This document shows, piece after piece, positions 2,613-40,465 of a stretch of 64,000 bases of DNA (positions are counted from its first letter, which is position 1; the number at the start of each line of letters is the position of its first letter). The position numbers and the translations under genes were made by a program. A model generated the notes under the pieces. That model did no database searches. It saw only the letters and a list, made by a program, of their open reading frames with translations, and had not been told where the DNA came from. This stretch comes from Oculina patagonica (taxonomy: Eukaryota). The stretch covers positions 21,328,001-21,392,000 of the forward strand of contig NC_135768.1 in NCBI RefSeq assembly GCF_052425735.1. The letters run 5' to 3'.

Positions 2613-5600
2613 ACTTATATTGCGCAAGTACCAATCAAGGATTTTCACTTGCTCATTACAATATTTATAAAAATTTAAATTACTAAATGGCCCTAAAATT
2701 AATAAAAATACTAATTTAATAAAATACATGATAAGTGTAAATTCCAATTAATAAAAAATAAAAATTAGCTTAAAAACGCCTTCTGAAACAAATTAGTCAT
2801 AAGATACTTTTTAAAACTATTTACAGATAAAATATTTCTAATAACATACCTAGAAGACCCTGTCCTCCCCACATGGTACTTGGGGTAATGCTAACCTCTG
2901 CAACATAAACAAACATTCATTAAACAAGCAAATTATAAATAAATGAACAAAATCAATAAGCTCTGACGAGATGAACATGAGGTGTCAAGCTATGACTCCA
3001 GTTTTTTTCACTGTGCATCTAATTGGAATTTACCAGTTTTGGTATTGTTAGGAGGTTGGGTGGGAGGGGGAAGGAGATAACTGCACCACCTGGAGAGGAA
3101 CCCTTGCAGTAAAGCAAGAGGCAAAAACAAAATCAACCCTATTATGGAGTCATTGGTACATGTCTTAAGGTAGCTTTAAACTCTCTTCTTAGAAACAATA
3201 TTAATTATCAAAATAAAACTGCTGGAGCGATCTGTAGTCATAGCTTAAAATATAAAAATGTTTAAAACAGATCTAAAAATATAAAACGATACTCTAAATT
3301 TTCGATCGCCTTCTGCGGTCTTCTTCAGAGAATGATGGATTTTTGCAAGGTTCGCAGAATTCTAATAAGCTACATCGACGTTATTGTTCATTGTCCCCCT
3401 GGGGAGCAACTAGCGATGCGTAAACCCTTGGGAAGGGCGCTCTTTCGTTTATAGTGTTTTTGTCGAGGAAGGAATGCAAGGATTCCAGAAACAGTCTTTT
3501 GTTCTTGCTGCTTACACCTGTTTAAAGAATTTTGGCGTAACTTGGATGTATGTCGTGGCCGATTTCTGCATGATGTTTAAGCACGGAGTTGATATTTCCG
3601 TTTGTTCCGGGCTTGTGTTCGGCTCCCCGCGATTTCTAGTTTCTTTTGCTTTCAACAACGTATGTGTTGTGGTTCAATTTTATCTTTGGTTTAAAATTTT
3701 TCAAACCAGTTTGATTTTTATTTCCTTTTGTCTCCGATTATGATAATGAACATAAAACAATGATAAATGAAAATCAAACTGGTTTGAAAAATTTTAAACC
3801 AACTATAAAATTGAACCACAACATATGCAAATGGACATGTCCTGCAAGTCACTTTGTATACGATTCCTTTCAATTGATCTTTATTCGGTCGGTCCTTGGG
3901 CTTTTTGAAGATATTTCCTAACATTCGTACTGGTTTAAACGCTGTCTTGATGTTTTCGCGGCTCAAAATACGCCGAACGCGCTCCGACACTCCTTTCACA
4001 TATGGAATGGACGTGTATGCCTTCGGATTCTCCTGGGTTCTTGGTTGCATGTTTGTTTTGTTTGATTCGCCAGCTGACCGCGAGCGCGTTCGGCAGATTT
4101 TGAGCCGCGAAATACAAGCGAAATAATTCCATGCGTCAAGCAATAGTTTTAAGTCAATTCGAGTGCCTGTTTTTAAAGGAAGAGTATTTTACTGACTAAA
4201 TAATCTCAATAAACGTTGTCAAACTCGAGATTTTCTTGTTTTGAAATCATGTCGGGACGCTTGATTAAAATGCAAATCAACGCGGCCGACAAATTGTCGC
4301 ACGTGTACTGAATTTGCAGACGGTCATGTAACTGTGTGAACATGTGTTGTTTACGTACACTTTGTGAAGAGTCATGGTCCTTTTTCTACTTCTTTACCAG
4401 CGTTTTATTTAAGACTTAAGTTTTATTCGATGAGTGTCCCAAAATATGTATTTTTTTTAATTTTATGGTGTGCGAACATCAAGCGCTTTTGATTTGAGGT
4501 CAAAAGAAATCTCCCGTGGGAATTACCACTGCGACTGTCACACTGAATCTTTCTTATGAATGAGAGTAATAATCATTTTCCCTACCTTCTGAGGAAAACT
4601 TTCGATTCACAACAGGCTTGAAAATCGAAACGTTTATGCCTGATGCGACGCGTGGGGGATGGAGGATCTTTCGCTTCGACGTTCGAAGAAAAAAAAATGA
4701 AAACGCATGCACTTATCCATTGCGTTACGCATTTGTTTGTTTGTAGTGTTTATAATATATTCAATCGACTGTTTTTATGCTCATTCATGCAGCGTGCGGC
4801 GAAGCACGCAATGAATGAGAATATTAAAATGGACCAGCTGTAGACGGAAGTTGTTTTTCGTTCCGTGGACGGAAGTGGTTTTTCGTTCCGTGGACGGAAG
4901 TTGTTTTTCGTTCCGTGGACGGAAGTTGTTTTTCCTCCGTGGACGGAAGTTGTTTTGCCTTCCGTGGACGGAAGTTGTAGTTCGTTCCGTAGACGGAAGT
5001 TGTCCGTCTTTGGTACCCCCTCCTTAATAAAAGTCAAAAATAAATTCCATGAAGCTCAGATGCACATGTGAAAAGAAATTACATCTTTTATAGTGTGATA
5101 AATAAACGTCAGATCAAAATTTCACGTTCACGCCGAGGGGGCCCTATAAAACGAGTTTATGTTAATACACTCTGACACACACAATCAAGTCCATCGAGGC
5201 AGCTATATTGGCAAGGTGCAAATTCGCTAAAGTTCACATTAGTAAGTAACCATTCCGGAGATCCCCTTTTTTCTCTTCTTTCCCTTGTAAGTGAAATTTA
5301 CGATGCCTTGAGTGGTTTTCCCGGTCACACATTGCGATTCGTCACGCACCGTCTTTTCCACATTATTAGAAAAAAAATAGATTAATTTTATCGTTTATAA
5401 ATTACCAAAGATTATTGACGTACCTTTATTTTCTATTTATGGTAAACATTATGTTGGTATTTTCGCCAACTGGGCAACGTCACGAGCCAAAATAAGGTCT
5501 GTTACGCGCGTAAAAATAGCAAACGTGCAAAACAAACATTCCTTTAGCTCGTTCATGCCGCGGAGCACGCAATGAATCAGTATATTAGATTGTTTTACAA

Positions 5601-8600
5601 GAAAATCACCTAATCACTATTACTTTTACCCTCCATTCGTGTTTTTTTGAATAATTTGTGCCAATGTTTTCTTTTTCAGCCACAGTTATTGTGTTTACAA
5701 TATCAATATTTCGGCAACAACAGCGTGTAAATTATTGCCAAATATATTCATTCGTAATTTTTGGCAAAACTGGCTTTACTTACTTTCAGAAACTAAACCA
5801 AAATTTACTTGATTAAATTGAGAAAAAAATCTTGGAAGGGTCTTTTTTTGTATGTTTTTCTATTTAAACTTGGCTCGTGACGTTACGCAGCTAATGTTCA
5901 CCCGCACGCATTTCTGTCGTGTACAATGAACCCAAAATAAAGCTACGTCAACTCTCTGTATAGCACTGCACGACCTGCACGCGTCACTTTTACGGAAATT
6001 TATCAAACATAATATATTCTTTCGTTTTTTTCTAAGACCGTTGAAAATGTCCTCGACCCTGACCCCCAATCCGTCTACGTCCAAGAGAAAGTATAAAGAG
6101 CGATCGAAAAAAAAAAGATCACCCGCCCGCATTTCTGTGTACAACGTACAATGAACCAAAAATAAAGTTGCGTCAACTCTGTTTGTTGTAATGCATGGCC
6201 CACACGCGTCTCTATTACGAAAATTAATCAAATTTATCTTTTCTCTCATTTCTGGTTTTTCCTAAGACCCTTAAACATCGCCCCCGACCCTGAGCCCAAT
6301 CTGTCTACGTCTAACAGGGAGTATAAAGAGTGATTGAAAAAAAAGTATTCAATGGAATGTTTTCTTGTGCGTTTGAAACAAAGTTTGTTTTGACTCGTGA
6401 CGTAACGCAGCTGAGGATCACCCGCACGCATTTCTACGTACAATCTACAATGAACCAAAAATAAAGCTGCATCAACTCTGTTTGTAATAATGCACGACCC
6501 ACACGCGTCGCTATTACGAAAATTCATCAAATGTATCTTTTTTCATTTCTGTTTTTTTCTAACACCCTTAAACATCTCCCCACCCTAACCCCAATCTGTC
6601 TATGTCCAACAGAAAGTATAAAGAGCGATTGAAAAAAAGTATTTTCAATTTCAATTTTGTGCTTTACCGATAACACATGCACAACATTATCATTCAACAA
6701 TGCTTTGCAAAGGGAACCACCACAACCAATAATTAATCAAAACAATTACCCATTACATGAATGAGCTGGCTCACAGGAGCCCTTTGATTGATTGCTGTTA
6801 TTCGAGGCCGTTCGAAATGAAGTGTATTCCTTTATATAGCGATGCTGTTCGAGCGAGTCTTTGATTTTCTTGTTTGAAAGCCAAAATTTCCAGCCGTTCG
6901 ACTTCAGCCGTGTGAAGAAAATTTACATCCGTGTAGCCGTTCGACTACATCCGTGCGAAAAAAAATTACATCCGTGTAGCCGTTTGACTTCATCCGTGCA
7001 ACAAAAATTTACATCCGTGGAGCCGTTCACAGAATCCGTGTAGAACGGCTCATCGAACCGTTTCTCATCCGTTCGCTTGCCGTGCGATCAGCCGAACACA
7101 CGGATTCTCTAAGGAACGTTTTCGCGTGAGAGGTCACAATTCTGTTTACAACAGCGGCAATCTTTGGCTCGTGAGCTACAGTGTAGTACAGTTTCACATA
7201 AACACCACTTATTATATCTGAAATGTTCAATCTGCTGAAAATGGAAAGGAAAGGCCTTTTTTCAAACAAAACAGCTTTGTCACGGCGCTCAGCTTGATGT
7301 CACATACGACGCAGAACTGAAATATTCAAAATGCTCTGTTTAAAAAACGAATGACACTATCGATCTGGAAATTTGCAAAAAGATATATTTTTAGTTTATC
7401 TTACGTCTAATGACAACGAAAATTTAGTACGCCTAGTGAATTTTAATTTCAGAATTTTATGACGTAACATGAAAACCAAGAATTACTAACGTTCATTACT
7501 AACGTGACACGAGATGTCGTGACACGAAACAAAAACGTGCTGCTGTGGATGTCGTGTTAACTAAAACATGTCACGTGGCAAGCGTAATAAAAATTTATAA
7601 TAATTTAAGCATAACTGCATATAGCTTATGGCTGCTATCAATATCACAATCTCACTTAATTTGCCTTTTAATGTTTTCTTGCGTCAATGGGTCATTGATA
7701 GCTTTTTTTTCAAATAAGCGTCCAATAATGTAAAACAATCTCACTTTGTTTGCGTTTGAATGTTTTATTTTTCATGGAAGCTGCGGCATTGATGGTGCGT
7801 GCTTTCAGGTTTTGTAGCACGAATTCTATTTTTTCACCACAAAAAATATTCAACTTTTTAGCTTTAAGTAAATTTGTTTTGTGAATTTGTTTACCTTTCT
7901 GTCAGCACGTATAGCGTTATTTTGAGCAGCGAATAAAATTTGAGAGAAAGATGTGCGTTTCTGCTCAACTCAAAAAGATGAAAAACGGATGACGTTGACA
8001 CGAGATGACGTGACGCGAAACAAAAACGTGCCATGAATGTCGTATTTACTTAAACACGTCAGATGGCGAGGGTAACTGCGTGTAGCTTATAGCTGCCATC
8101 AGTAATGTCACAATCTCACTTCATTTGCCTTTGCATGTTTTCTTACGTGAATGGGTCATTGATAGCGTATGCTCTGAGGCTTCGTACGGCGAATTCTATT
8201 ATCTTTTATCACCTGATTGGAGGATATGTGTAACCTCTTTCGATTTGTTTTGTAAAAATTCAACCTTGTTCCTTGGAAGAGGGAGACCCTGGGAATGAGG
8301 TTGGAGAATAATTTGGTTTTGATTGACATGTGCTGAATGGCGTTTCAAAGAACCTTTCTGTCAGCACGTTTACTGTAAAATGCATAAGTTAATTGCGGTT
8401 TAATATCAGAATGGAGTGATCGAGTGAGTGAGTGATCCGTGAGGGAAACACGTGACGTCGAGAATGATCACTACACCTTCATTACCATTCGGTAAAAAAC
8501 GAATAGGGCAAACAGGGGTACATGTACAACTGTACATGCAAGTGAAGTTTCATTATCAGAAACTGCCTTGGTATACAAAGAATTCAATGTACAATACTTA

Positions 8601-10595
8601 CCTCTAACTTTACAAGTTTTGCTACTGAACACCAACATCTTTACAGGTTTTTCTGCATTAGATTTTAGAATTTCTTTCAGTGTTTCATTATCTTGGTCCT
8701 GCAAAAAAAGTTATCAAAGAACTTAATTTCCCTTAGCTGCAATACACCGCAAAAAAAATGTCTTCTTTGGTCAGTTTTGGTAACACATCCTTTGTTCTGA
8801 TGTATGGTAAATATATCTTATTAAACAGTTTCAGGGCTGCAAATATTTTTTTCACTTGAAAGGACATATGTTTTACTAAGAGACCATCTTGGTTGGCAAA
8901 ACAAAATTGTGGTCAGACAGATTTTTATTCATCATTGCCGTAAAATGATTTACGATCAGAAAATTGTCTGGACATCATGTCAGACCACACTAGGGAATTT
9001 GTCAAACATGAGCAAATTTTAGTCGGCCAATGTCCCATGACCAACTGTTATTTGCAGCCCTGCATTTTAGTGTGTAATATCGCTGTATATTTTTGCGAGT
9101 CATGCAGTGTTTGGCAAGTCAAAATACAAATGACAAGTAAAAATGTTCAGCTATACTACACACTAAAATGTCTAATAAGAGTTTTATTATCCAATGGTTT
9201 CTTTCCCCAAAATGCTGACTTGCCACTTTTTCAATCTTTTGTGTGGTCAGGAATGAGACGAGTAAAAATATCGTGAGATATTTGTCATCATCATCATCAT
9301 CATCATCATTTATTTGCCACTTCAGAATTAAACATACAAATTAAAATAACTTAAAAAGATAGGGCGAGGAGACCTCCAAGAAACCACAAGGCTTATGGGG
9401 GAGGCCACCTCGGGTTAGCAATAAGTTAGTAATTTCGCTGTGAATGTGCAGCTAGGCCTAGCTAGGCCTAGGCGTTATTCATACTTTACAAAGCAGAGTT
9501 GGATAATAATATATGTTAGTATATACTCAAACAGTGGATAGCATTTTTGGTGCGCGCTGATTGGCTACTCAAACTCCGAATATCCTTAGCTATTCACCTC
9601 TGAGCAACTCGCTCGCGAAAACTTCACTTGTTAACAGAATAAACTGATCAAAAGTCATCATTTCAGGCTACATTGTCTCACTGTTTGAGTATAATTACTA
9701 AAACAACTATTCATCTCAGTGTCGGTGGCTAGTGGTGGATATTTACCTCGCTGCTTCGTGGCTTGGTAAATATCCACCACCAGCCATAGTTGTTAAATAG
9801 TTGTTAAATAGTAAATATAAAATGAAGGAAAACACCAAACTGTACCAAGGGTAAAATTGAGCCACAACACAGACATCTACATGTAAGCTTTGTTGGCCAA
9901 AAATATACATGTAGATTGGAATTAAAACTTTCATATCCTAATAACCAGTATAATACATGTAGGTACACCACCTACATTGTACATGCATCACAATATGTTT
10001 TCAGTTTGTTTTAATTGTCCTTAAGTACGTTTTGGCCGCCACTTACATAAACAGCTGCTTTTTTATGAGTTAGACAAAAGAAAGAGTGTTTGCAAAGTTT
10101 CAAAAGATTACTTTAAAATAGGTTTAAGTTGCATTTTACAAGGGCTGGAACAAGAGAGAACAAAATCACGAAAAGGGAGAATAAAACGCAGAAAAGTCTT
10201 GTATAGGATAAAACAAAAATGTAAATTCGCCGACCTCTGGAACCAGAAGTTATATCAACGTAACCACATTGCATGACCACCTACCAGTCTTGTGTTTTCA
10301 ATCGAAATGATGAAATCAAAGAACGGTTCCAATCCTGCTTTATACCCAGGAGAATTTTCTTGAACCTACAATGTGACATGTAAAATAAAACGGCGTTAAA
10401 ATTCAATTCAACAGCGCCATTCAGTTCCAAATAATTTTATAATGCCATCACAGGAAAGCAAACGCAAGTTTATAAGCTCGTAGCTTGAGTATTTTAAAAT
10501 CAAATGCGCAGATAACAGCGATCGTATATTACCCTAAGTACATGATATCCCTCTGATCCACCGCCTGGGATTTCTGCGGATTGGCCTGCTCCCAT
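604..10595 (-). CDS. GORASP2: Golgi reassembly-stacking protein (GRASP55/65 family), coding exons 1-7; gene continues beyond the left edge
   Basis: Exons complement(10533..10595, 10285..10365, 8602..8698, 2850..2897, 1292..1350, 1099..1185, 604..693), all GT-AG and phase-consistent. They splice to [175 protein letters not shown], the recognisable GRASP tandem-PDZ domain with an MGxxxS myristoylation motif. Confidence 0.96.
1621..1681. repeat. (TAA)n microsatellite, left half of an interrupted LINE tail
   Basis: About 20 perfect TAA units; source of the poly-N ORF in the track. Confidence 0.95.
1682..2544 (-). mobile_element. 5'-truncated Penelope-like element (GIY-YIG endonuclease, 3' UTR, hammerhead), possibly Naiad-type, inserted in an (ATT)n tract
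   Basis: Minus frame reads [14 protein letters not shown]...[17 protein letters not shown]...LGKH...H...RQVQEGVNI...MNSKLEY (ORF 2102..2449), a PLE GIY-YIG domain with Cys/His ligands. Flanked on both sides by (TAA)n. Confidence 0.85.
1740..1780 (-). ncRNA. Minimal type I hammerhead ribozyme motif in PLE 3' region
   Basis: Minus strand: tgtc-CTGAAGA-g-aacc(ctgaaga)ggtt-GAAA-gttc-TA-gacg. Conserved core, stems I and II, very short stem III typical of PLE hammerheads. Confidence 0.7.
2545..2610. repeat. (AAT)n microsatellite, LINE tail
   Basis: About 22 perfect AAT units; source of the poly-N and poly-L ORFs. Confidence 0.95.
2611..2842 (-). mobile_element. 3' fragment of a CR1/L2-type LINE with (ATT)n tail
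   Basis: Minus strand encodes [23 protein letters not shown], resembling the CR1/L2 ORF2 C-terminus, then an AT-rich UTR and (ATT)n. Candidate TSD aacata at 1617-1622 and 2843-2848. Confidence 0.6.
3292..3332 (-). ncRNA. Minimal type I hammerhead motif in PLE 3' end
   Basis: Minus strand: ttct-CTGAAGA-a-gaccgc(agaag)gcgatc-GAAA-att-TA-gag. Confidence 0.65.
3661..3825. mobile_element. Palindromic MITE inserted in the PLE GIY-YIG coding region
   Basis: Termini tgttgtggttcaatttta / taaaattgaaccacaaca with further internal inverted symmetry; TA dinucleotides at the flanks. Confidence 0.8.
4840..5008. repeat. ~25-bp minisatellite, 7 units (ccgtggacggaagttgtttttcgtt)
   Basis: gacggaag recurs at 4843, 4868, 4893, 4918, 4942, 4967 and 4992; most units contain the dyad TTCCGT-GG-ACGGAA. 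Confidence 0.9.
5870..6640. repeat. Three diverged tandem units (~220-300 bp) inside GRASP intron 3
   Basis: cacccgcacgcatttct...tacaatgaaccaaaaataaag...tcaactct...acggaaatt recurs at ~5899, ~6120 and ~6419. Confidence 0.8.
7500..8390. repeat. Two diverged ~490-bp tandem units, probably transposon-internal
   Basis: tgacacgagatg.cgtgac.cgaaacaaaaacgtgc...tcacaatctcactt...aatgggtcattgatagc at ~7505 and ~7996. Confidence 0.7.
8832..9062. mobile_element. hAT-like MITE
   Basis: 14-bp perfect TIR cagggctgcaaata / tatttgcagccctg; no clean TSD. Confidence 0.6.
9505..9800. mobile_element. Non-autonomous hairpin-ended repeat (Crypton-like); related copy at ~10855-11020
   Basis: Hairpin ggtggatatttacc-tcgctgcttcgtggctt-ggtaaatatccacc; the same arm recurs at 10861-10890. 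Confidence 0.5.
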
Positions 10596-18950: not shown

Positions 18951-20482
18951 TACCGTTCATTTGCTTGACTTACTCAATAACTTCTTTCCCCCGCTGGGGC
19001 ATACAGAATCGGGCCATAATGTCATCTTGAAAATAATTTTAAAAGCGTAAAAAATTCGTCGGCTGACTTTTTACTTTTAAATTTTAATCGATAAAACTTT
19101 CCCCAGTTGAGATTAGCTTGAGATTATTAACACTGGTATAAATAGTACCGTTATATTTGATTTGAGCAGTCGGCGAATGTATTAATCTTATAAACACAAC
19201 CGAACATCTCTAAAGTTAACGCAAGCTGCGAAGGAGACCAAAGGTTATGAGGCTAACTCGATAATACCTTTACTGGTACAGTATGAGATTGTGTGTTTGA
19301 ACTGTAGCCGGCAAGAAAGTTTTGAATTTTAAATTCTTTTCCCAAGTTTTTGGCAGAAATCTTTATTCCTGGGAAAGCACATTTAAAGCATGAAAAATTC
19401 TGCATACCATTCCATTAGCTTATAATTACTTTCTTTAGTTAAGTTATTTCGGCGCCTAAATTATCAGGTTAAAAAGCGGGATTTTCTTGATCTCGACTAA
19501 ACTACTGTAGTATTTCAAATTAAATTAGACTTATAAACTGTCGGCGTTTGAACGAATATATTTATTCCACGAGCCGAGCTAATTCAACCTAAGTAAGTAT
19601 TTGGAAATCAGTTAGGTGCCTAAAACAGTTAAGTACTGTTAATTTCATTTTGGAACGGCTCAATCGATCGCCACGCTGGCTCAGCCGGAATTACAGCTAT
19701 CAGCAACTCTGACTCAGACGCCGAAATTGTGCTGTGTTCAGTCTTGTGCAAGTCTCTCCTGACCCAAGAGTATAAATGGCTTTCAGCGAACCGTTACTAA
19801 AAAGAAAAACAAGCAAAATGCCAGGAAGTATCCTTGAATGGACTAGCAAGGAAGGCAGCTAGTCCAGGTTCCGTTCATAAAAACGATTGTCATATCGCTG
19901 ATTTACATCTTTTGTTAATGATATTACTAAGATCGGCGCCATAATCAAAAGGGAGGATTTTCTTGATTTGGCCCATATTCGAATTAAGTTAGGCTCATTT
20001 GAACGTTTGGCGCCAAAACAGCTAAGATGGAAACGGTGATGCCGAAAAGTTAAAGAAGCACCGCCTGAACTACCACTCAGTTGCTAATGAAGACTTAAGA
20101 GGCTCCGACTGAGAATATGAAGAATCGTTGGACAGGCTGGGGAAATCGAAAATCTTGAAACTTTGCCTGAATAACACCTTTGGGGAACTATGTTCGAAAA
20201 TATTATTCTCATCTTCTAGGAATTTATGGTTTTCGAGAAATTAAGAAAAAACGAAAATAACGGTTTTAGCTCATTAAATATGCAAAAAATATGCGTAAAA
20301 ATGGCAAAGTTCTCGATATTCCTATAAGAGCAATTTTCAATGCTTTGAATCGAAATAAACTTAAAATAATAGCTTGACCTTTCTTCTACCAGGCAACATA
20401 AACTTTCAATTTTTTTCCGGCTATTTTGAGGTTTCCTTCGCCTTTTAAAATACTGCTTTATCAAGCACTTCGGGAAAGGGCA

Positions 20483-21342
20483 AATTTTTTACAAAATACT
20501 AGTGAGCAGCACAAGCAACGAAGAAATCTTGTTGACTGAAGTTTTATTCTCCTGGACAATTTTTTAATTTTTTAAAAAATTTTTTACAAAATACTAGTGA
20601 GCAGCACAAGCAACGAAGAAATCTTGTTGACTGAAGTTTTATTCTCCACCGGTTTCGTCTGATAACTACAGACTTCGTCAGGGAGTTTGAACAAGATTAC
20701 ATTGGAAACTTATTTTATACCTATCTAATGTAGGACAAATCACGTTCCCATAAGTTAAGGGTGTGAACACATAACACCCACTAGAAATACGCGCAGGATA
20801 TGACTAAGATCCTGCGTAAAATAGTAATGTTTAATTTTGGGGCTCACGGATTTAACGTTAAATCCGTGAGCCCCAAAAAATAATTATTTACATAGATGTG
20901 CTAACGTTTGAGTAGACTTATAGCTAACAATACAGCTAAGATCGGGTAAATGCTTAAGAATAACTTTTTTGATCCCAACATAACTACAATTAAAGGAAGT
21001 TTTAAATACCACTCCTTTTTGTCGTTGCGGCCTATTATACTTAGAAAACCATTTCCTCCTATTGCTATAGTTTATGTCCTTAAAAATAGGTAACAAAAAC
21101 TTAGCAGGATACCCCCTAAGGCGTAAGCGTGTCCAGAAAAGCTGGCGGGTTTCATTAAATGAATTATATGTGGAGCTATTTCTGGCATAGCGCATAAGTT
21201 CGCCTTTGATAAAGCCGCGTTTGTTGCTAGAGGGGTGAAATGATTCGAATGGTATATATGTGGAGCTATTTCTGGCATAGCGCATAAGTTCGCCTTTGAT
21301 AAAAGCGCGTTTGTTGCTAGAGGGGTGAAATGATTCGAATGG
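20483..21342 (-). mobile_element. PLE-A: 5'-truncated Penelope-like element (RT C-terminus, 3'UTR, hammerhead, duplicated terminal unit)
   Basis: ORF 20884..21285 YIPFESFHPSSNKRGFIKGELMRYARNSS...RLRLRGYP matches the PLE RT C-terminal region and stops without a GIY-YIG. ~90-bp tandem duplication 21165-21342; ~70-bp terminal unit twice (20483-20552, 20578-20647). Confidence 0.85.
20644..20687 (-). ncRNA. Hammerhead-like motif of PLE-A (variant cleavage site)
   Basis: Minus strand: ctcc-CTGACGA-a-gtctg(tagttat)cagac-GAAA-ccgg-T-ggag. The H17 nucleotide appears missing or is G, so activity is uncertain. Confidence 0.65.
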
Positions 21343-22322
21343 AATAAAAATAAATGACAGGCCTGCACGGACTCCCTGTGTGCCTTTTGTGGTCGCGTCG
21401 CATTAACACCTTCAAATTATATTTTTGCTCTAACAAGCATGTCTTTCAGGGATTTACCCTTTTTGAAAGAGACGATCGGAGGATTTTTAAAGATCGTTTT
21501 CAGCAAAGGCTGATTTTGTATTAGGCTCCATTGTTCCATCAGTATTTGTTTAACGTTTTTAACAGCCGGGTGGTATGTGGTGACAAAAGGCAAAATCCTC
21601 TCGTGACTTTTTTTCTTTTGTGTAAGAGCCGATTGTCTAGAGGCAAAGTTGACCTCTGACAAAGACCTTTCTATGATGTTTTCGGGATACCCGCGTGCTT
21701 GAAGGCGTTGTTTGAATTTCACAAGGCTCTCTTCAAATGTTTTTTTCGAAGAGTTTGTTCTGAGCAATCTTATTGCTTCGCCTTTAATGAAACCGTCCAT
21801 CAAGTTTATTTACCAATTTACAAACAGTCTCTTGTAAGTCAGAGAGTCCTTTTCGTAATTCGGCTATTTCTTCATTGTTGTTTTTTACAATGTTCGCCGA
21901 AGGCGTTTGGTTGAGAGGTTGCCTATTTACATTTGTTTGTTTACGGACTGAGGGTACATTGTTAGCCCTCCGTTTATGGCTCTCGAGCCTTCGTTTATGG
22001 AAGCGAGAAAGGGCATCCACCAAGCTTTGCTCTGCTTGTTGTTTGATACCCTTTATTTCTCTATCGAAGGTGGTGTCTGGCGTAATGTTTGGTTTGGCCG
22101 TATATTGCAAAGATTTCGGACAAGTCCGATTTGCTAAATGTTTCTCAAGTTTTTCGATAGATTGTTCTGTTTTGGCTATTTTAGCCTGCACAGCGTTTGT
22201 GTCTGTGTATTTCCTTTTCTGTCCTCGCTTCACAGGGTTTTGTCCGTTTTGTCTTGGCGGGCTGTTTTCACGTTGTCTTTTAGGCTGGTACTGAGTTGAA
22301 CGTACTGGCCGTGGTTGCGATG
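21343..22322 (-). mobile_element. PLE-B copy 1 (inverted, 5'-truncated, RT-deleted)
   Basis: Near-identical reverse complement of 23637-24616; carries ORF 21417..21803 GFIKGEAIRLLRTNSS...ARGYP...LPFVTTYHP...LVRAKI. Confidence 0.9.
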
Positions 22323-24618
22323 TACCCTCAGTCCGTAAACAAACAAATGTAAATAGGCAACCTCTCAACCAAACGCCTTCGGCGAACATTGTAAAAAACA
22401 ACAATGAAGAAATAGCCGAATTACGAAAAGGACTCTCTGACTTACAAGAGACTGTTTGTAAATTGGTAAATAAACTTGATGGACGGTTTCATTAAAGGCG
22501 AAGCAATAAGATTGCTCAGAACAAACTCTTCGAAAAAAACATTTGAAGAGAGCCTTGTGAAATTCAAACAACGCCTTCAAGCACGCGGGTATCCCGAAAA
22601 CATCATAGAAAGGTCTTTGTCAGAGGTCAACTTTGCCTCTAGACAATCGGCTCTTACACAAAAGAAAAAAAGTCACGAGAGGATTTTGCCTTTTGTCACC
22701 ACATACCACCCGGCTGTTAAAAACGTTAAACAAATACTGATGGAACAATGGAGCCTAATACAAAATCAGCCTTTGCTGAAAACGATCTTTAAAAATCCTC
22801 CGATCGTCTCTTTCAAAAAGGGTAAATCCCTGAAAGACATGCTTGTTAGAGCAAAAATATAATTTGAAGGTGTTAATGCGACGCGACCACAAAAGGCACA
22901 CAGGGAGTCCGTGCAGGCCTGTCATTTATTTTTATTTCAGTTTGATGTTTTCCAGACAGGCCCCGTCCTTGTGTGCGATCACTGTAGCGTGCATAATGAG
23001 TTAATGCACAATTGTACACATGTACAAAATACAAAATAACGCTTAATAATAACATTTTAAGCGTATTCTTTACGAAGGATAAAGAAATACTATTACGGAA
23101 AACCGTAAAAAACTATCACTATGCGTCTTAGTAGCCTTTATGGCTTACTATACAGCAAAACAAGCCTTCTCAAAAACACAAGCTCACCTTCACAATGAGT
23201 AGGATCGAAATCCCCTGCACCTGATTGGTTTGTTAAACAACATCAAGAACCAATAGGAATAGTGCAAACTCGATCCTCTACCCTAACGGTTCACATATAT
23301 AAAGGTCAAAAAAACATTTTTCTTTCGGGAACGGAATTGAGAAAACATCTCTACCTTTCCCTGAGAAACTTTGCAACACTAGCATCAAACGACAGCTGAA
23401 GAGACTCGAGAAGAGTCGAAACCGCCGGTCCTGTTGTAGCCACCATAAATAGTTGCAGTTTAATATGTCTGCCGTTGACCAACCTCTGGCAATACACCAT
23501 GATGATGTCAATGATGAACACGACATCGAACCACCAAAGACGCCAGACTATCGTCCCAATGGCGACGACTTAGAACTGAACGACCAAGAAATGTCTGCCA
23601 TAATGGAAGACTATGACGAGGAGAACAGTCCTCCGCCATCGCAACCACGGCCAGTACGTTCAACTCAGTACCAGCCTAAAAGAGAACGTGAAAACAGCCC
23701 GCCAAGACAAAACGGACAAAACCCTGTGAAGCGAGGACAGAAAAGGAAATACACAGACACAAACGCTGTGCAGGCTAAAATAGCCAAAACAGAACAATCT
23801 ATCGAAAAACTTGAAAAACATTTAGCAAATCGGACTTGTCCGAAATCTTTGCAATATACGGCCAAACCAAACATTACGCCAGACACCACCTTCGATAGAG
23901 AAATAAAGGGTATCAAACAACAAGCAGAGCAAAGCTTGGTGGATGCCCTTTCTCGCTTCCATAAACGAAGGCTCGAGAGCCATAAACGGAGGGCTAACAA
24001 TGTACCCTCAGTCCGTAAACAAACAAATGTAAATAGGCAACCTCTCAACCAAACGCCTTCGGCAAACATTGTAAAAAACAACAATGAAGAAATAGCCGAA
24101 TTACGAAAAGGACTCTCTGACTTACAAGAGACTGTTTGTAAATTGGTAAATAAACTTGATGGACGGTTTCATTAAAGGCGAAGCAATAAGATTGCTCAGA
24201 ACAAACTCTTCGAAAAAAACATTTGAAGAGAGCCTTGTGAAATTCAAACAACGCCTTCAAGCACGCGGGTATCCCGAAAACATCATAGAAAGGTCTTTGT
24301 CAGAGGTCAACTTTGCCTCTAGACAATCGGCTCTTACACAAAAGAAAAAAAGTCACGAGAGGATTTTGCCTTTTGTCACCACATACCACCCGGCTGTTAA
24401 AAACGTTAAACAAATACTGATGGAACAATGGAGCCTAATACAAAATCAGCCTTTGCTGAAAACGATCTTTAAAAATCCTCCGATCGTCTCTTTCAAAAAG
24501 GGTAAATCCCTGAAAGACATGCTTGTTAGAGCAAAAATATAATTTGAAGGTGTTAATGCGACGCGACCACAAAAGGCACACAGGGAGTCCGTGCAGGCCT
24601 GTCATTTATTTTTATTTC
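22320..24618 (+). mobile_element. PLE-B partial tandem (1680-bp monomer, ~620-bp pseudo-LTR), internally deleted non-autonomous Penelope-like element
   Basis: 22320-22938 repeats 24000-24618. The monomer has a hairpin-rich segment, TATA-like tatataaa (23296), a hammerhead, an N-terminal ORF (ATG 23465..24175, with a HLANRTCPKSLQY..P motif and coiled-coil-like segments) abutting, out of frame, the RT C-terminal ORF 24156..24542. No RT core or GIY-YIG. Confidence 0.88.
23390..23436 (+). ncRNA. Intact type I hammerhead ribozyme
   Basis: cgacag-CTGAAGA-gactc(gagaa)gagtc-GAAA-ccgccgg-TC-ctgttg: 6-bp stem I, 5-bp stem II, canonical core, GUC triplet with predicted cleavage after C23430. Confidence 0.88.
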
Positions 24619-24623
24619 ATTTT

Positions 24624-24693
24624 GGAGAATAAAACTTCAGTCAACAAGATTTCTTCGTTGCTTGTGCTGCTCACTAGTATTTTGTAAAAAATT
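24624..24693 (+). mobile_element. Third copy of the ~70-bp PLE-A terminal unit
   Basis: ggagaataaaacttcagtcaacaagatttcttcgttgcttgtgctgctcactagtattttgtaaaaaatt, the reverse complement of 20578-20647. Confidence 0.9.
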
Positions 24694-27013
24694 GGAAGTT
24701 TACTTTTTACGAACATAAACGTAAATAATTATTAAAACTATGATGGACATATATCGCTGTTAGATCCGTTCAGTTGTCATTAATGGAAATAAAATACGAA
24801 AAGTTTCTCATTTTGTTTTAAAACAACTATATAAAAGGTTTCGATTTTCTGGGCTTGGACTCCTGAAGCCCCACCAACAAGAGAGGCACAACTGTAAAGG
24901 GTCATTCTATTTTTAAATTTCAGCCGAATAATTTTGTGCTTTGTGTTAAATGTCCTGGCGCCGAGTTCTGTCGCTGTGTACGTGTTCGGTCTCTTTAAAT
25001 TGAATTATAAATTAATTTTATTTTGTGATGTGCATCTGAATAAATGAATGAATGGTTTTTGCACGATCGAAACCTTTTATATAGTTGTTTTAAAACAAGA
25101 TGAGAAACTTTTCGTATTTTATTTCCATTATAAATGACAACTGAACGGAAACTAACAGCGATATATGTTCATAATATTTATGTACGTTTATGTTTATAAC
25201 TGAAGTCAACTTCCAAATTAATAATACTACGCAAGTTACGGCTTTGACGTGAGTTACCCGCCAGAGTAAATAAAAGGTACAAATCATTCCCAATTTCAGG
25301 TAAGTGAATGATATTATTATCTCATTCTTTAATCTTAAATTTGAAATGCAACTGAGTCCTAACAAACAAATCAAATTCAATTGTTGACAAGAAAATTTAT
25401 AACGTGACGCAGGTCACGCAATGAGCTCAGTCGATGATTTTACTGTTTTTTCTTCTTTCTTCGCGTTTATATAACCTGTTGATAGGCATAAGACGTCAAC
25501 AAAATCAAATTAAGTTTAAACTTGCTTTCTTTGTGCAAATCATAGCTCCCAAATTTAAATTTAGCGGACCAGATCACTTAGCGGAGAACGAATTCAAAAC
25601 TTAGCTTTATGCAAATTAGACACGAGGAGGTCGTAAACTTTGGTTTCTCATTTGTGTGAATCTTGAGTACCCAGATTTTTTATTTAATATTATAACATAA
25701 GAGACATCGAGCTTTTGCACAGTGTTTAGTTTGACTCGATATCGGACATATCAAGGTGCTTTTTCGGCCTCCAAAGTTTCTCAATTTTTGCCCTTTCCCG
25801 AAGTGCTTGATAAAGCAATATTTTAAAAGGCGAAGGAAACCTCAAAATAGCCGGAAAAAATTAAAGGTGTATGTTGCCTGAAAGAATAAAGGTCAAGCTA
25901 TTATTCTAAGTTTATTTCGATTCAGAGCATTGAAAATTGCTCTTATAGGAATATCGAGAACTTTGCCATTTTTACGCATATTTTTTGCATATTTTTTCTT
26001 AATTTCTCGAAAACCATAAATTCCTAGAAGATGAGAATAATATTTTCGAACATAGTTCCCCAAAGGTGTTATTCAGGCAAAGTTTCAAGATTTTCGATTT
26101 CCCCAGCCTGTCCAACGATTCTTCATATTCTCAGTCGGAGCCTCTTAACTATGTAATCTTTGGAACGCCAACCTCTAAACAACACCTTTGATCTATATCA
26201 TACATAAAGCATATAAAGACGAAAGCTTACTTTAGCCGTCTATTAAACACGACAGAAATCTGGCGCTCACGACACCTGTTGGAAAACGAGCGTAAAATTT
26301 GTTATAGAAAGACTTCTTTCTGTATTAAATCTGACAAAGTCCGTCTACAATTCCGTGACTACAAATTTTTTTCAACACAATCTTTGGCAACACGCTAACA
26401 CTTGTAAAAGATATTTAAGCTTTTTTTGTTCCGATTTCTTGCGGGTTTCACTGCGGTTATTAAACTTCAAAATTAAACATCTCTCAAATTCCGTCGTTGT
26501 ATTCAATCTTCTCCTCGATACTTCCCATCACGACTAAAACAATTCATTTCCTCCTTCTTTTAACACTTAATAAAATAAATTTTTTAATAGGAAATCACGT
26601 GTTTGTATTCCTGTTTTTTAAGTAAATCGTCCTCTCGATTTCTAGCTTACGTGACTCCTCGCAAAAGATAAAAGAAATTTGCAGATGGACGCGTTTTTTG
26701 CAAGCTCTTCCATGTAAACATGATTTATAGTAAGGAGAACAAGCTTTTGGACGAAACTAGTTCTTGGAGCTTGAAAGCTCAGAAGAGCCGAACAACGTCT
26801 TGTTTTAATTGCTCGTTTATGTAAACATTCAAATAATAATGACGTAGGCGTGATTATGAACGTAATCTTTCGAATCCTATTTTTGTTATTTTCCTATCCT
26901 ATGGAATTACCGAATAGAGCTCGCTGCAGTTTGCTAATTAACACGTTCTTCAAATGACTTCCGCTTTCCTGCGCACGTGCGCACGTGCGCTCTAGCTGCA
27001 GTGGTGACTTTAA

Positions 27014-38774: not shown

Positions 38775-38970
38775 TATTTTTCAGCAATGACACGAGCATG
38801 GGACAAAGAAAAATTGTGAGTCCCCGACGGGAATAGAACCCATGGCCTCCCAGATACCGGTTGGGCGCTCTAACCAACTGAGCTACGAGAGACTCGTGGT
38901 GAGCTGGGCCAGTTACTAGGTTGATATGTGACATGTGTCCGGCATTCTGCTAGGATCAGCAATGTCGAAT
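38775..38970 (-). mobile_element. tRNA-derived SINE-like repeat (tRNA-like segment 38817-38895)
   Basis: Minus strand gagtctctcgtagctcagttggttagagc...gggttctattccc...gggactca has A/B boxes and an acceptor-like stem but a defective anticodon arm. Confidence 0.7.
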
Positions 38971-40465
38971 TCATCGAGTGTGGAGTAATTCGTGATATTT
39001 TGTAGCTAACCGCATGTCACTTAAATTTATGTATTAAAAAATACGGGTCACCATGCTCGTTTAGAAGAAAACGACCACTTATTTCCCTGCCGAGCTTAGC
39101 CTATGCGCGCGCCCTAAATGACGCGCAAAATTATGAGTAGCCATAGATCACAAGCGACTGGGAGACGAGTATCGCCTGAAATTTCTTCTCGTAGCTAATA
39201 TTGTTAACAAACTGCGCTTGCAATCGTAGGTTTTTGACTGGTATATTGCATCGCGTACTCCGAGCTTTGAAAAGTTGAAAGCATACATTTTGCTCAAGCT
39301 CGCAAGTTTTTTAAGTCTTTGAAGAAAACCTTTTAGAGATTCCTTTTTGCTGTTGACAGAAAGTTTCAAAGATGAATCAACTGTCAATTATTTCTCACAT
39401 TATGACCGTAGTTCGTCTTGAATGAACTGAAAACGGTGCCCGTGTAAAACGCTCAAAAACCCGCTCGATGCCATTTAGACCCATTTATGTAATTGGCTTA
39501 AGTCTTGAAGTCGTTTTGACGTTTTAAAATATAAAATATCATCAAAAGTTTTCTTACATGGCTAAGGCTAGCTGGCTAAGATGAAATTCAAGCCTTAATG
39601 TACAAAGTTTAAGCTTTAAAACATCTTTTACTACGGACGCCATCTTGCTGCTAACTGCGTTGCCATGGCAATTTTATAATTTCACATGTGAAATTATAAA
39701 TTAACGTTAAAATTTCGCGCCAAAATTAAGGAGTAATTTGTCACCTATGATATTAGTCTTGGAATTCCTTTCTCTACTTATTCAACCTGACCTCAGTCAG
39801 GGATCTTCCACTCTAAATAAGGTTCAAAGTGAAACTCAGTAGCGGTTCTTTTTTGCTGCTGATCAAGTTTCAACTTATATCAACTAACTGTTTTTGTAGA
39901 AAAACTACTTAAAATGCATGGCTGGCACTAGAACACTTTTAATGGGCCAAGTGACGTCTGGTACAAAGCATTGAAGAGATCCGGCAACAAGAAAGACTGG
40001 GTTTTAATCTGCATTGTGTGGTTCCCTGCATTCAAAAGTTTCAAACTTTGTTTTTTCTTACATATGTTGAGAAGAAATATTTCGGCGAACTGTGTGCTAA
40101 TTTCTAAACGGCCCATCTTAGAGGTCCGTATTGCTTTTTTTCCCGCTAACTTCTGCACTTTTTCCAGAAGGTGAACTCTAGATTTTTGCCGTGTTAATAG
40201 ACGACTATAGTTAGCTTCTGTCCTTATATGCGTTATCTATGCTATAGATCAAAGGTATTGTTTAGAAGTTGGGAATTCAAAGATGAAATAACTAAAAGCC
40301 TTGCTAACAAAAGTGTGGTAGTTGTGGGTGGGCCCCGTAACTTTCATCCCCTTTCCACCTAAGCTGTTTTGGCGCCAAATTTTTTAATGAGCCTAACTTA
40401 ATTCGAATTTAGGCCAAATCAAGAAATCCTCCCTTTTTGATAGAGGCGCCGATCTTAGTAATAAT

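Follow-up and report, generated by a model that had tools for sequence, protein, structure and literature searches.

A 64,000-nucleotide (nt) stretch of the genome of the coral Oculina patagonica (RefSeq assembly GCF_052425735.1, contig NC_135768.1, positions 21,328,001 to 21,392,000 of the forward strand; hereafter the window, in whose coordinates all positions are given) contains a young 4.2-kb insert that is a head-to-head chain of pieces of two families of Penelope-like elements (PLEs), here called A and B. With a probability of roughly 0.6, we consider that this insert was formed in a single double-ended priming event with serial template switching at one damaged site. A preliminary description, made from the bare sequence, had proposed that both ends of one break were primed on A RNA and that the enzyme then switched templates. 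This is supported as the most economical reading. Every internal joint of the insert sits at a recurrent end, namely the 5′ end of a short terminal unit of A (hereafter U) that coincides with a ribozyme cut, the 3′ end of U, the 3′ end of B, or a position of A designated x.

Layout of the insert and its host site

The layout was obtained by repeat search and direct reading. The left arm lies on the minus strand and reads, in element sense, 983 nt of B, a 690-nt 3′ segment of A containing a 90-nt re-copy, U, a filler, U again and host DNA. Seen from the host, U copy 1 (20482-20552, minus strand), a 70-71-nt terminal unit of A, adjoins the left host junction with an AAA overlap and is separated from U copy 2 (20577-20647, minus) by a 24-nt A/T filler (20553-20576, minus; direct reading). 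U copy 2 runs on into the 3′ segment of A (20648-21337, minus), which consists of the last ~120 codons of the A open reading frame (ORF; listed as 20884-21285, minus, thumb/HTH_animal part), the 3′ untranslated region (UTR) with a perfect 44-bp palindrome kept in relatives (20835-20878), and a minimal hammerhead ribozyme of A type (20644-20687, minus) recognized by alignment of relatives. The inner end of this segment is position x (CCATTCG), and its 90-nt tandem re-copy occupies 21158-21247 and 21248-21337 (minus; repeat search, 94% identical). The inverted arm of B (21338-22322, minus; monomer positions 698-1680) is joined to x by its 3′ end and meets the right arm head-to-head at a 3-bp ATG microhomology (22320-22322). 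The right arm, on the plus strand, reads in element sense 0.37 + 1 B monomers at a period of 1680 nt, TTTT, U and host DNA. A repeat search delimits both the partial B copy (22320-22939, plus; monomer positions 1061-1680) and the full 1680-nt monomer (22940-24619, plus). TTTT (24620-24623, plus; direct reading) leads from the B 3′ end to U copy 3 (24624-24693, plus), which adjoins the right host junction with an AATT overlap. The two arms and their ATG meeting point had been correctly described beforehand, and the 1.4 B monomers first counted in the right arm amount to 1.37.

The three U copies are 100% identical to one another and the B copies are 99.6-99.8% alike, differing at 23684, 23815 and 24064, the approximately three positions already noticed at first sight, and at one base at the left junction. 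Within the window, neither U nor the B 3′ end occurs again, with 0 occurrences expected by chance. In three joints of the insert, and in the composite locus L009 (see below), B ends at one and the same 3′ site. The two 90-nt copies of A both begin at x, differing at 5 of 90 positions, which would mean that the enzyme got to x twice. A common end in copies that carry five differences points to two different A RNAs that shared their 5′ end, or to a strong stop. The TTTT at 24620-24623 may correspond to untemplated A residues added to the complementary DNA (cDNA) at the end of the U template.

The insert interrupts one arm of an older long inverted repeat. The left part of arm 1 (20095-20484) pairs with 26148-25787 at 90%, its right part (24694-24845) pairs with 25214-25066 at 85%, and the intact arm 2 (25066-26148) holds a stretch, 25216-25786, that has no counterpart in arm 1 and is unique in the window. 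The host loss deduced from this paralogous arm is ~571 bp, in agreement with the ~560 bp estimated earlier, and, as also stated then, there is no target-site duplication (TSD) at the insert borders. The AATT microhomology with the host that had been claimed for both outer junctions is found on the right; on the left the overlap of host and U terminus is AAA, or at most AAATT with slippage. Both host junctions are A/T-rich and of the ATT kind, like the sites cut by an Anolis PLE enzyme, the Poseidon protein PAc (Frangieh et al., 2024; PMC11167929). A missing TSD, a target deletion and junction microhomology together characterize break-repair (endonuclease-independent) insertion, and all three are seen at this insert; it would be an atypical resolution, since related composites carry 12-bp TSDs. 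Note also that the host inverted repeat (20053-26148; 1.1-kb arms, 220-bp loop), which is absent from a paralogous repeat copy at ~40240-40463, is probably itself a mobile element of fold-back type. Elsewhere in the window, a tRNA-like sequence is found at 38823-38889 on the minus strand (Rfam tRNA, 38.6 bits).

Two Penelope-like families and a ribozyme cut site

A and B are both Penelope-like, as had been supposed: the C-terminal piece of the A ORF is homologous to that of B (26% identity, E 3e-13), and relatives of both carry DUF8422, RVT_1 and HTH_animal domains. The A piece matches many coral proteins, with a common stop at the ...LCK end. Longer relatives of A (550-583 amino acids, with DUF8422, RVT_1 and HTH_animal and without GIY-YIG) are present in Porites lutea, Acropora palmata and others, and the family has apparently intact 583-amino-acid reverse transcriptase (RT) ORFs in many corals as well as a related copy in the O. 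patagonica genome. At the locus itself only the thumb/HTH parts of a PLE RT are present, the three domains being carried by relatives at 65-94% identity; what had been called the RT C-terminus of A is thus a homologous C-terminal piece, though restricted to the thumb/HTH_animal part. Pfam returned nothing significant for the three ORFs of the insert. Pfam scans of A, B and their relatives gave no GIY-YIG domain, the ORFs ending directly after the HTH part; a distant relative (P0358) carries the GIY-YIG domain PF01541. PLE endonucleases being divergent, A and B may use a separate or undetected nuclease. More generally, the A and B families stand for a widespread coral PLE lineage (P0125, P0270, P0333; locus L004) with an ORF of 550-583 amino acids that stops just past the HTH_animal part; it has a hammerhead and no detectable GIY-YIG, yet is dispersed and shows 12-bp TSDs in composites.

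The hammerhead of A is made of a CUGACGA core, a 5-bp helix II, GAAA, a palindromic ACCGGU helix III and a helix I formed by CUCC/GGAG. At gathering scores, Rfam reported no ribozyme in the window, and it missed the A hammerhead even below threshold. Support comes from covariation in an alignment of 21 distinct relatives, in which 95.6% of cells are paired and 6 of the 12 pairs show compensatory changes, a score reached by 0 of 500 shuffles. The B hammerhead (23390-23438, plus) has a complete core, read by hand, and a predicted cut between 23430 and 23431; it corresponds to the Rfam family HH9 below the gathering score (25.8 bits, E 0.003). The hammerheads initially announced for both elements are therefore retained on different grounds, that of B with a subthreshold Rfam match and that of A by covariation. 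Palindromic helices III are typical of the minimal hammerheads of PLEs, which are thought to act as dimers (PMC4209133).

U belongs to A, since hammerhead and U-like stretch are continuous in the composite locus L002 (77% identical). All three copies of U start at GGAG, the first base past the hammerhead cut, whose position is set by the 21 aligned relatives, and the sequence that precedes GGAG is different each time (ACCGGU, GTCCA and TTTT). In 44 relatives the scissile nucleotide N17 is C (41 of 44), A (2 of 44) or T (1 of 44) and is missing in 0 of 44; in the A copy of the insert ACCGGU runs straight into GGAG, and N17 is absent. Three joints at the exact end of a ribozyme product, one of them short of only the scissile base, would be hard to explain without cutting of the template RNAs.

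The 3′ end of U is identical in the three copies and lies ~70 nt downstream of the A hammerhead cut. A full-length copy of a related A subfamily elsewhere in O. patagonica (L070) has its U-like 3′ end inside the RNA, with the 5′ UTR and ATG coming next, and U is therefore the stretch between the hammerhead cut and the start of reverse transcription. The filler between U copies 1 and 2 consists, in element sense, of two repeats of the last 8 nt of U (AAAAAATT) and GTCCA. Related 3′ ends show stutter of this kind in L002, L003 and L070. Among 56 metagenomic coral loci, a strict pattern detects it in at least 9, and inspection by eye in more, so that the filler reflects a family habit of stuttering at the RT start site and not a random sequence. 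As a side observation, in six metagenomic coral contigs (L013, L017, L038, L054, L061 and L062) the sequence after the U-like 3′ end is identical to that in L070, namely the 5′ UTR and ORF start of the element itself, so that these joints are tandem ones, whose junction points vary.

B contains two ORF remnants. ORF1 (236 amino acids; 23465-24175, plus) corresponds to the N-terminal coiled-coil/basic region of a PLE ORF and stops at a deletion joint near 24160-24165, and the frame-shifted ORF2 fragment (128 amino acids; 24156-24542, plus) to the thumb/HTH part. Relatives of ORF1 extend into the GLKF region and the RT. L009 is 90% identical to B up to monomer position 1226 and 94% identical from there on, and between these parts it has 3.5 kb (~1.4 kb net of a nested insertion) holding DUF8422 and RVT_1. 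Because L009 matches B on both sides of this RT-holding extra stretch, B is an internal-deletion derivative of an RT-bearing element, with a frame shift. Neither B nor its parent has a nuclease domain, and B ORF1 and the upstream ORFs of L004 are coiled-coil/basic in character, without a GIY-YIG match. B had been presented as an RT-less family: the absence of the RT agrees with the L009 match around the internal deletion, but RT-less B is no more than a candidate family, as look-ups by sequence and protein, in collections with only incidental coral DNA, found no second copy of it. For B ORF1, for B ORF2 and for the ORF that crosses the head-to-head joint, exact-protein look-ups likewise gave no match. 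The candidate P0001/L001 was rejected as a second copy, L001 being identical to the window (chromosome CM126645.1 of GCA_052425735.1) and reached through a gene model with B ORF1 as its first exon. This public model, ACROYT_G036130 (P0001), describes a 350-amino-acid 'hypothetical protein' that starts with B ORF1 (23465 onward) and is spliced to unrelated downstream sequence; it is likely an annotation artefact.

The hammerhead of B is its sole one in the locus and lies outside the repeated part, which gives one per 2.95 unit-equivalents. If B behaved like A and PAc, its start site would lie ~70-90 nt past this hammerhead, and no arm ends there. A strong hairpin bridges the B-to-B joint, and its loop contains the B 3′ end (...CATTTATTTTTATTTCA) (22896-22976, plus; -32.5 kcal/mol, z -4.25, with 0 of 200 shuffles folding as well). 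The first and last ~40 nt of B are also complementary. Folding of B RNA as a panhandle, or of tandem RNA as this hairpin, could bring 5′ and 3′ ends together for end-to-end copying. Two candidate termini of B were discarded: U as its own 3′ tail, since the B-to-B joint lacks U, and the outer element X of L009 as its own terminal repeat, since X has no similarity to the 5′ 1000 nt of B.

Origin of the chain

Three loci, of which L002 and L009 come from two other coral assemblies, provide the comparison needed to weigh how the chain arose. L002 (positions 4009-7164; ENA ERZ26858540) is a mixed composite bounded by one 12-bp TSD (AAACACCCATAC). Its outer arms are a 250-nt tRNA-bearing tandem repeat, inverted in orientation on the two sides, its interior is a 5′-truncated A-like copy whose U-like 3′ end connects to one of the arms at the inner side, and its head-to-head joint holds a stutter of the U-like terminus. 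A small TIR element (about 4812-6055) interrupts the A-like copy of L002. L009 (positions 4437-10462; ENA ERZ25071797) is likewise a mixed composite bounded by one 12-bp TSD (CTTTTACAGTGG), in which the outer arms are two inverted stretches of an unrelated tandem repeat, X, and an RT-bearing B-like element lies inside with its 3′ end joined to X. The outer ends of X carry a 7-nt (TCCAGAG) microsatellite in inverted orientation, which looks like reiterative copying of a short template. L070 (positions 6420-10089; CM126644.1, inside a GTF3C1-like gene model) is arranged as inverted terminal repeat, direct repeat, ORF and direct repeat, and contains a perfect 313-bp head-to-head palindrome, with 0 nt between its arms, that is annotated as gene ACROYT_G033325. 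Two further sets were left out of the comparison, a tRNA element in L011 that lies ~150 nt from an A-like 3′ part without a direct joint, and older B-like copies (L005-L008) with uninformative ends. Taken at sequence level, L002 and L009 indicate that mixed chains recur, that they may be single events and that the RT-coding partner may be the inner one, the host being adjoined in both loci by a short element without coding sequence; their arrangement therefore means that position in the chain assigns neither helper nor passenger.

In the scheme that we favor, two facing DNA 3′ ends, 571 bp apart in the intact sequence, would each have primed reverse transcription, both at the fixed internal start site of A RNA that is the 3′ end of U. 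On the left, the enzyme would have copied U and run off at the ribozyme-cut 5′ end, stuttered twice on the last 8 nt of U, and restarted on a second A RNA, in which the ribozyme site was crossed with loss of N17; after ~600 nt it would have arrived at the fixed end x, re-copied the last 90 nt to reach x again, and moved to the 3′ site of B RNA for a further 983 nt. On the right, U would have been copied to run-off at the cut, about four untemplated residues added, and the same B 3′ site used for a first landing, from which the whole B unit was copied, and for a second one that yielded 620 nt more. The two cDNAs would then have been joined through the 3-bp microhomology, with loss of the DNA between the priming sites. 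The layout, the stutter, the absence of N17, the recurrent ends and the identity of A and B are established by the sequence; the single event, the order of synthesis and the ribozyme cutting of the templates are what we infer. The joints flanking B display neither duplication nor loss of A or U sequence, unlike what is expected for a later insertion of B. The L002 and L009 composites, with inverted outer arms and one 12-bp TSD each, also count for a single event. A snap-back (fold-back) copy of one arm is excluded, as the arms differ in content and in B coordinates.

Several points weigh against this scheme. It requires about nine template changes, the structure is known from one assembly alone, and one locus that lacks a TSD does not prove a single event. 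Taken by itself, the inner B block resembles an ordinary PLE insertion (an inverted copy plus a partial tandem), and the outer A/U block does so likewise. Regarding the ribozyme, N17 could have been lost by a simple 1-nt deletion or could be lacking throughout this A subfamily in O. patagonica, a free-standing U starting at the cut was seen in 0 of 60 related metagenomic loci, and in the PAc work cutting was unnecessary in vitro and no reads ended at the cut (PMC11167929).

The preliminary description had gone further and suggested that B rides on A. This claim is not upheld, as it rests on two joints of one event, and in the L002 and L009 composites the inner place is taken by the RT-coding element. 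A stricter form refines the favored scheme: B, lacking an RT, would be a dedicated passenger, mobilized only via reactions begun on A RNA by the A enzyme. B-family 3′ ends do adjoin another element and never the host in four of four joints, neither outer end lies ~70-90 nt past the B hammerhead, where A and PAc have their 3′ end, and a source of enzyme is conceivable in the apparently intact 583-amino-acid RT ORFs of the A family in many corals and its related copy in O. patagonica. We nevertheless regard this form as doubtful. The sample is tiny (one event and L009), the inner B-like element of L009 encodes an RT itself next to the unrelated partner X, and in L002 the inner position belongs to the A-like element. 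Moreover, B keeps its own 3′ site and might be served by the RT of its parent family, and no cross-mobilization between PLE types was found in a rotifer (PMC3846280). We are similarly hesitant about a broader proposition, namely that coral Penelope-type enzymes routinely chain RNAs end to end by starting downstream of the ribozyme cut, running off at the cut and re-priming on the fixed 3′ site of any RNA present in the same particle. Cutting would then be an in vivo step with the loss of N17 as its scar, the mixed chains A-B, L002 and L009 would record the sharing of enzymes, and B would be a cross-family passenger of A.

That two ordinary insertions occurred in succession, first one of A in inverted form (U-filler-U-A head-to-head with a bare U) and later an inverted-plus-tandem one of B exactly at that joint, appears unlikely to us. 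Each block taken alone does have the canonical PLE layout (PMC8557442; L070), PLEs inserting into PLE sequence have been reported (PMC11167929; PMC3846280), and a coding element occupies the inner joint in L002 and L009 too. However, the entry point of B would have to be no more than 0-4 bp away from the old joint, with nothing duplicated or removed. The first base of U is the usual one, and A stops at x, the very base reached by the earlier re-copy; and related composites have 12-bp TSDs where B here is flanked by none. An origin in RNAs that were chimeric beforehand, by transcription through nested source copies with B in or beside A, would require no family switching at the site. There are documented cases of read-through and of foreign sequence captured between the terminal repeats of PLEs (PMC3846280), as well as of non-autonomous PLEs sharing 3′ ends with autonomous ones (PMC8557442). 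We find this improbable, given that the arms differ in their B-to-A joint (B to x versus B-TTTT-U), so that two source loci would be needed, that the B-to-B joint lacks U, which is thus not part of the B unit, and that the window holds no second copy of either joint. An assembly artefact, or a later DNA-level inversion or duplication of a simpler insertion, is very improbable, although PLEs arranged in tandem or inverted form do cause problems in assembly (PMC8557442). The two arms are unlike in length, in content and at three bases, every joint sits at an element end that is found again in independent assemblies, and the public record holds the same sequence, albeit from the same assembly.

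Relation to known systems and significance

Tandem and inverted products are the rule in PLE insertions (PMC8557442). The layout given in that study of 2021 is shared by our insert in its head-to-head arms with 3′ ends outward, partial tandem, 5′ truncation, A/T-rich target and a hammerhead in the terminal repeat region, and L070 is a plain version of it in O. patagonica. Differently from it, the arms of the insert chain two families, the outermost unit is only the 70-nt stretch past the ribozyme cut, no 30-40-bp 'tail' is recognized, and a 571-bp target deletion stands in place of a TSD. The C-terminal GIY-YIG domain of the canonical endonuclease-bearing PLEs (Penelope/Poseidon, Neptune and Nematis) is lacking in A and B. 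PLEs with an N-terminal endonuclease (Naiad/Chlamys/Hydra) have an N-terminal GIY-YIG with a CxC linker and no canonical hammerhead, whereas hammerheads are present here. The trans-mobilization described in Adineta vaga (Arkhipova et al., 2013; PMC3846280) provides a parallel, with PLE termini outside, foreign cargo inside and template jumps invoked by its authors; the cargo in our case is another PLE, an RT-deleted derivative present in both orientations, while cross-mobilization between PLE types was not observed there.

The biochemistry of PAc, which cuts and extends both DNA strands, offers further points of comparison (Frangieh et al., 2024; PMC11167929). In vitro it starts reverse transcription internally at a fixed distance past the cut (~85-92 nt, as against 70 nt here), cuts A/T-rich DNA of ATT type, and does not need homology between primer and template. 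In contrast, ribozyme cutting is dispensable for PAc and no RNA ends at the cut were seen, whereas the DNA copies described here begin exactly at the cut, and A and B are without GIY-YIG. Non-LTR retrozymes (Cervera and de la Pena, 2020; PMC7229834; Li et al., 2026; 10.64898/2026.07.22.740005) resemble B as non-autonomous, hammerhead-bearing and tandem-forming partners of PLEs. They are short non-coding units in tandem arrays with one hammerhead per unit and a circular RNA stage; B differs in being a 1680-nt deletion derivative with two ORF remnants and a hammerhead outside the repeated part, not a small non-coding repeat.

For LINE-1 elements, studies associated with the names of Buzdin (2002), of Ostertag and Kazazian (2001), and of Morrish (2002) reportedly describe template-switch chimeras, twin priming and endonuclease-independent insertion at breaks. 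As generally understood, these share with our insert the chimeras made by jumps between RNAs, the inversions arising from both DNA ends, and the deletion, missing TSD and microhomology of repair-type insertions. LINE-1 twin priming is said to involve one RNA and to leave an inverted part without its 3′ end; here a complete U closes each arm, the two arms cover partly the same B positions, and the PLE-type enzyme is telomerase-related. The 2014 discovery paper reportedly offered no in vivo evidence on PLE hammerheads. In limited literature searches, we found no account of cross-family PLE chimeras or of insert ends at a ribozyme cut. The general behavior of PLEs was known already.

For the coral, this is an ordinary young repeat insertion within another repeat. 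Its bearing is on PLE integration and on the role of hammerheads in vivo, through copies that begin at the exact cut site, a missing scissile base, stutter and the use of both DNA ends. The insert can be read as a natural record of PLE copying, in which a dependence of one family on the other is not shown. Should the pattern extend across the genome, a survey of mixed insertions could show which enzymes mobilize which non-autonomous repeats of corals.

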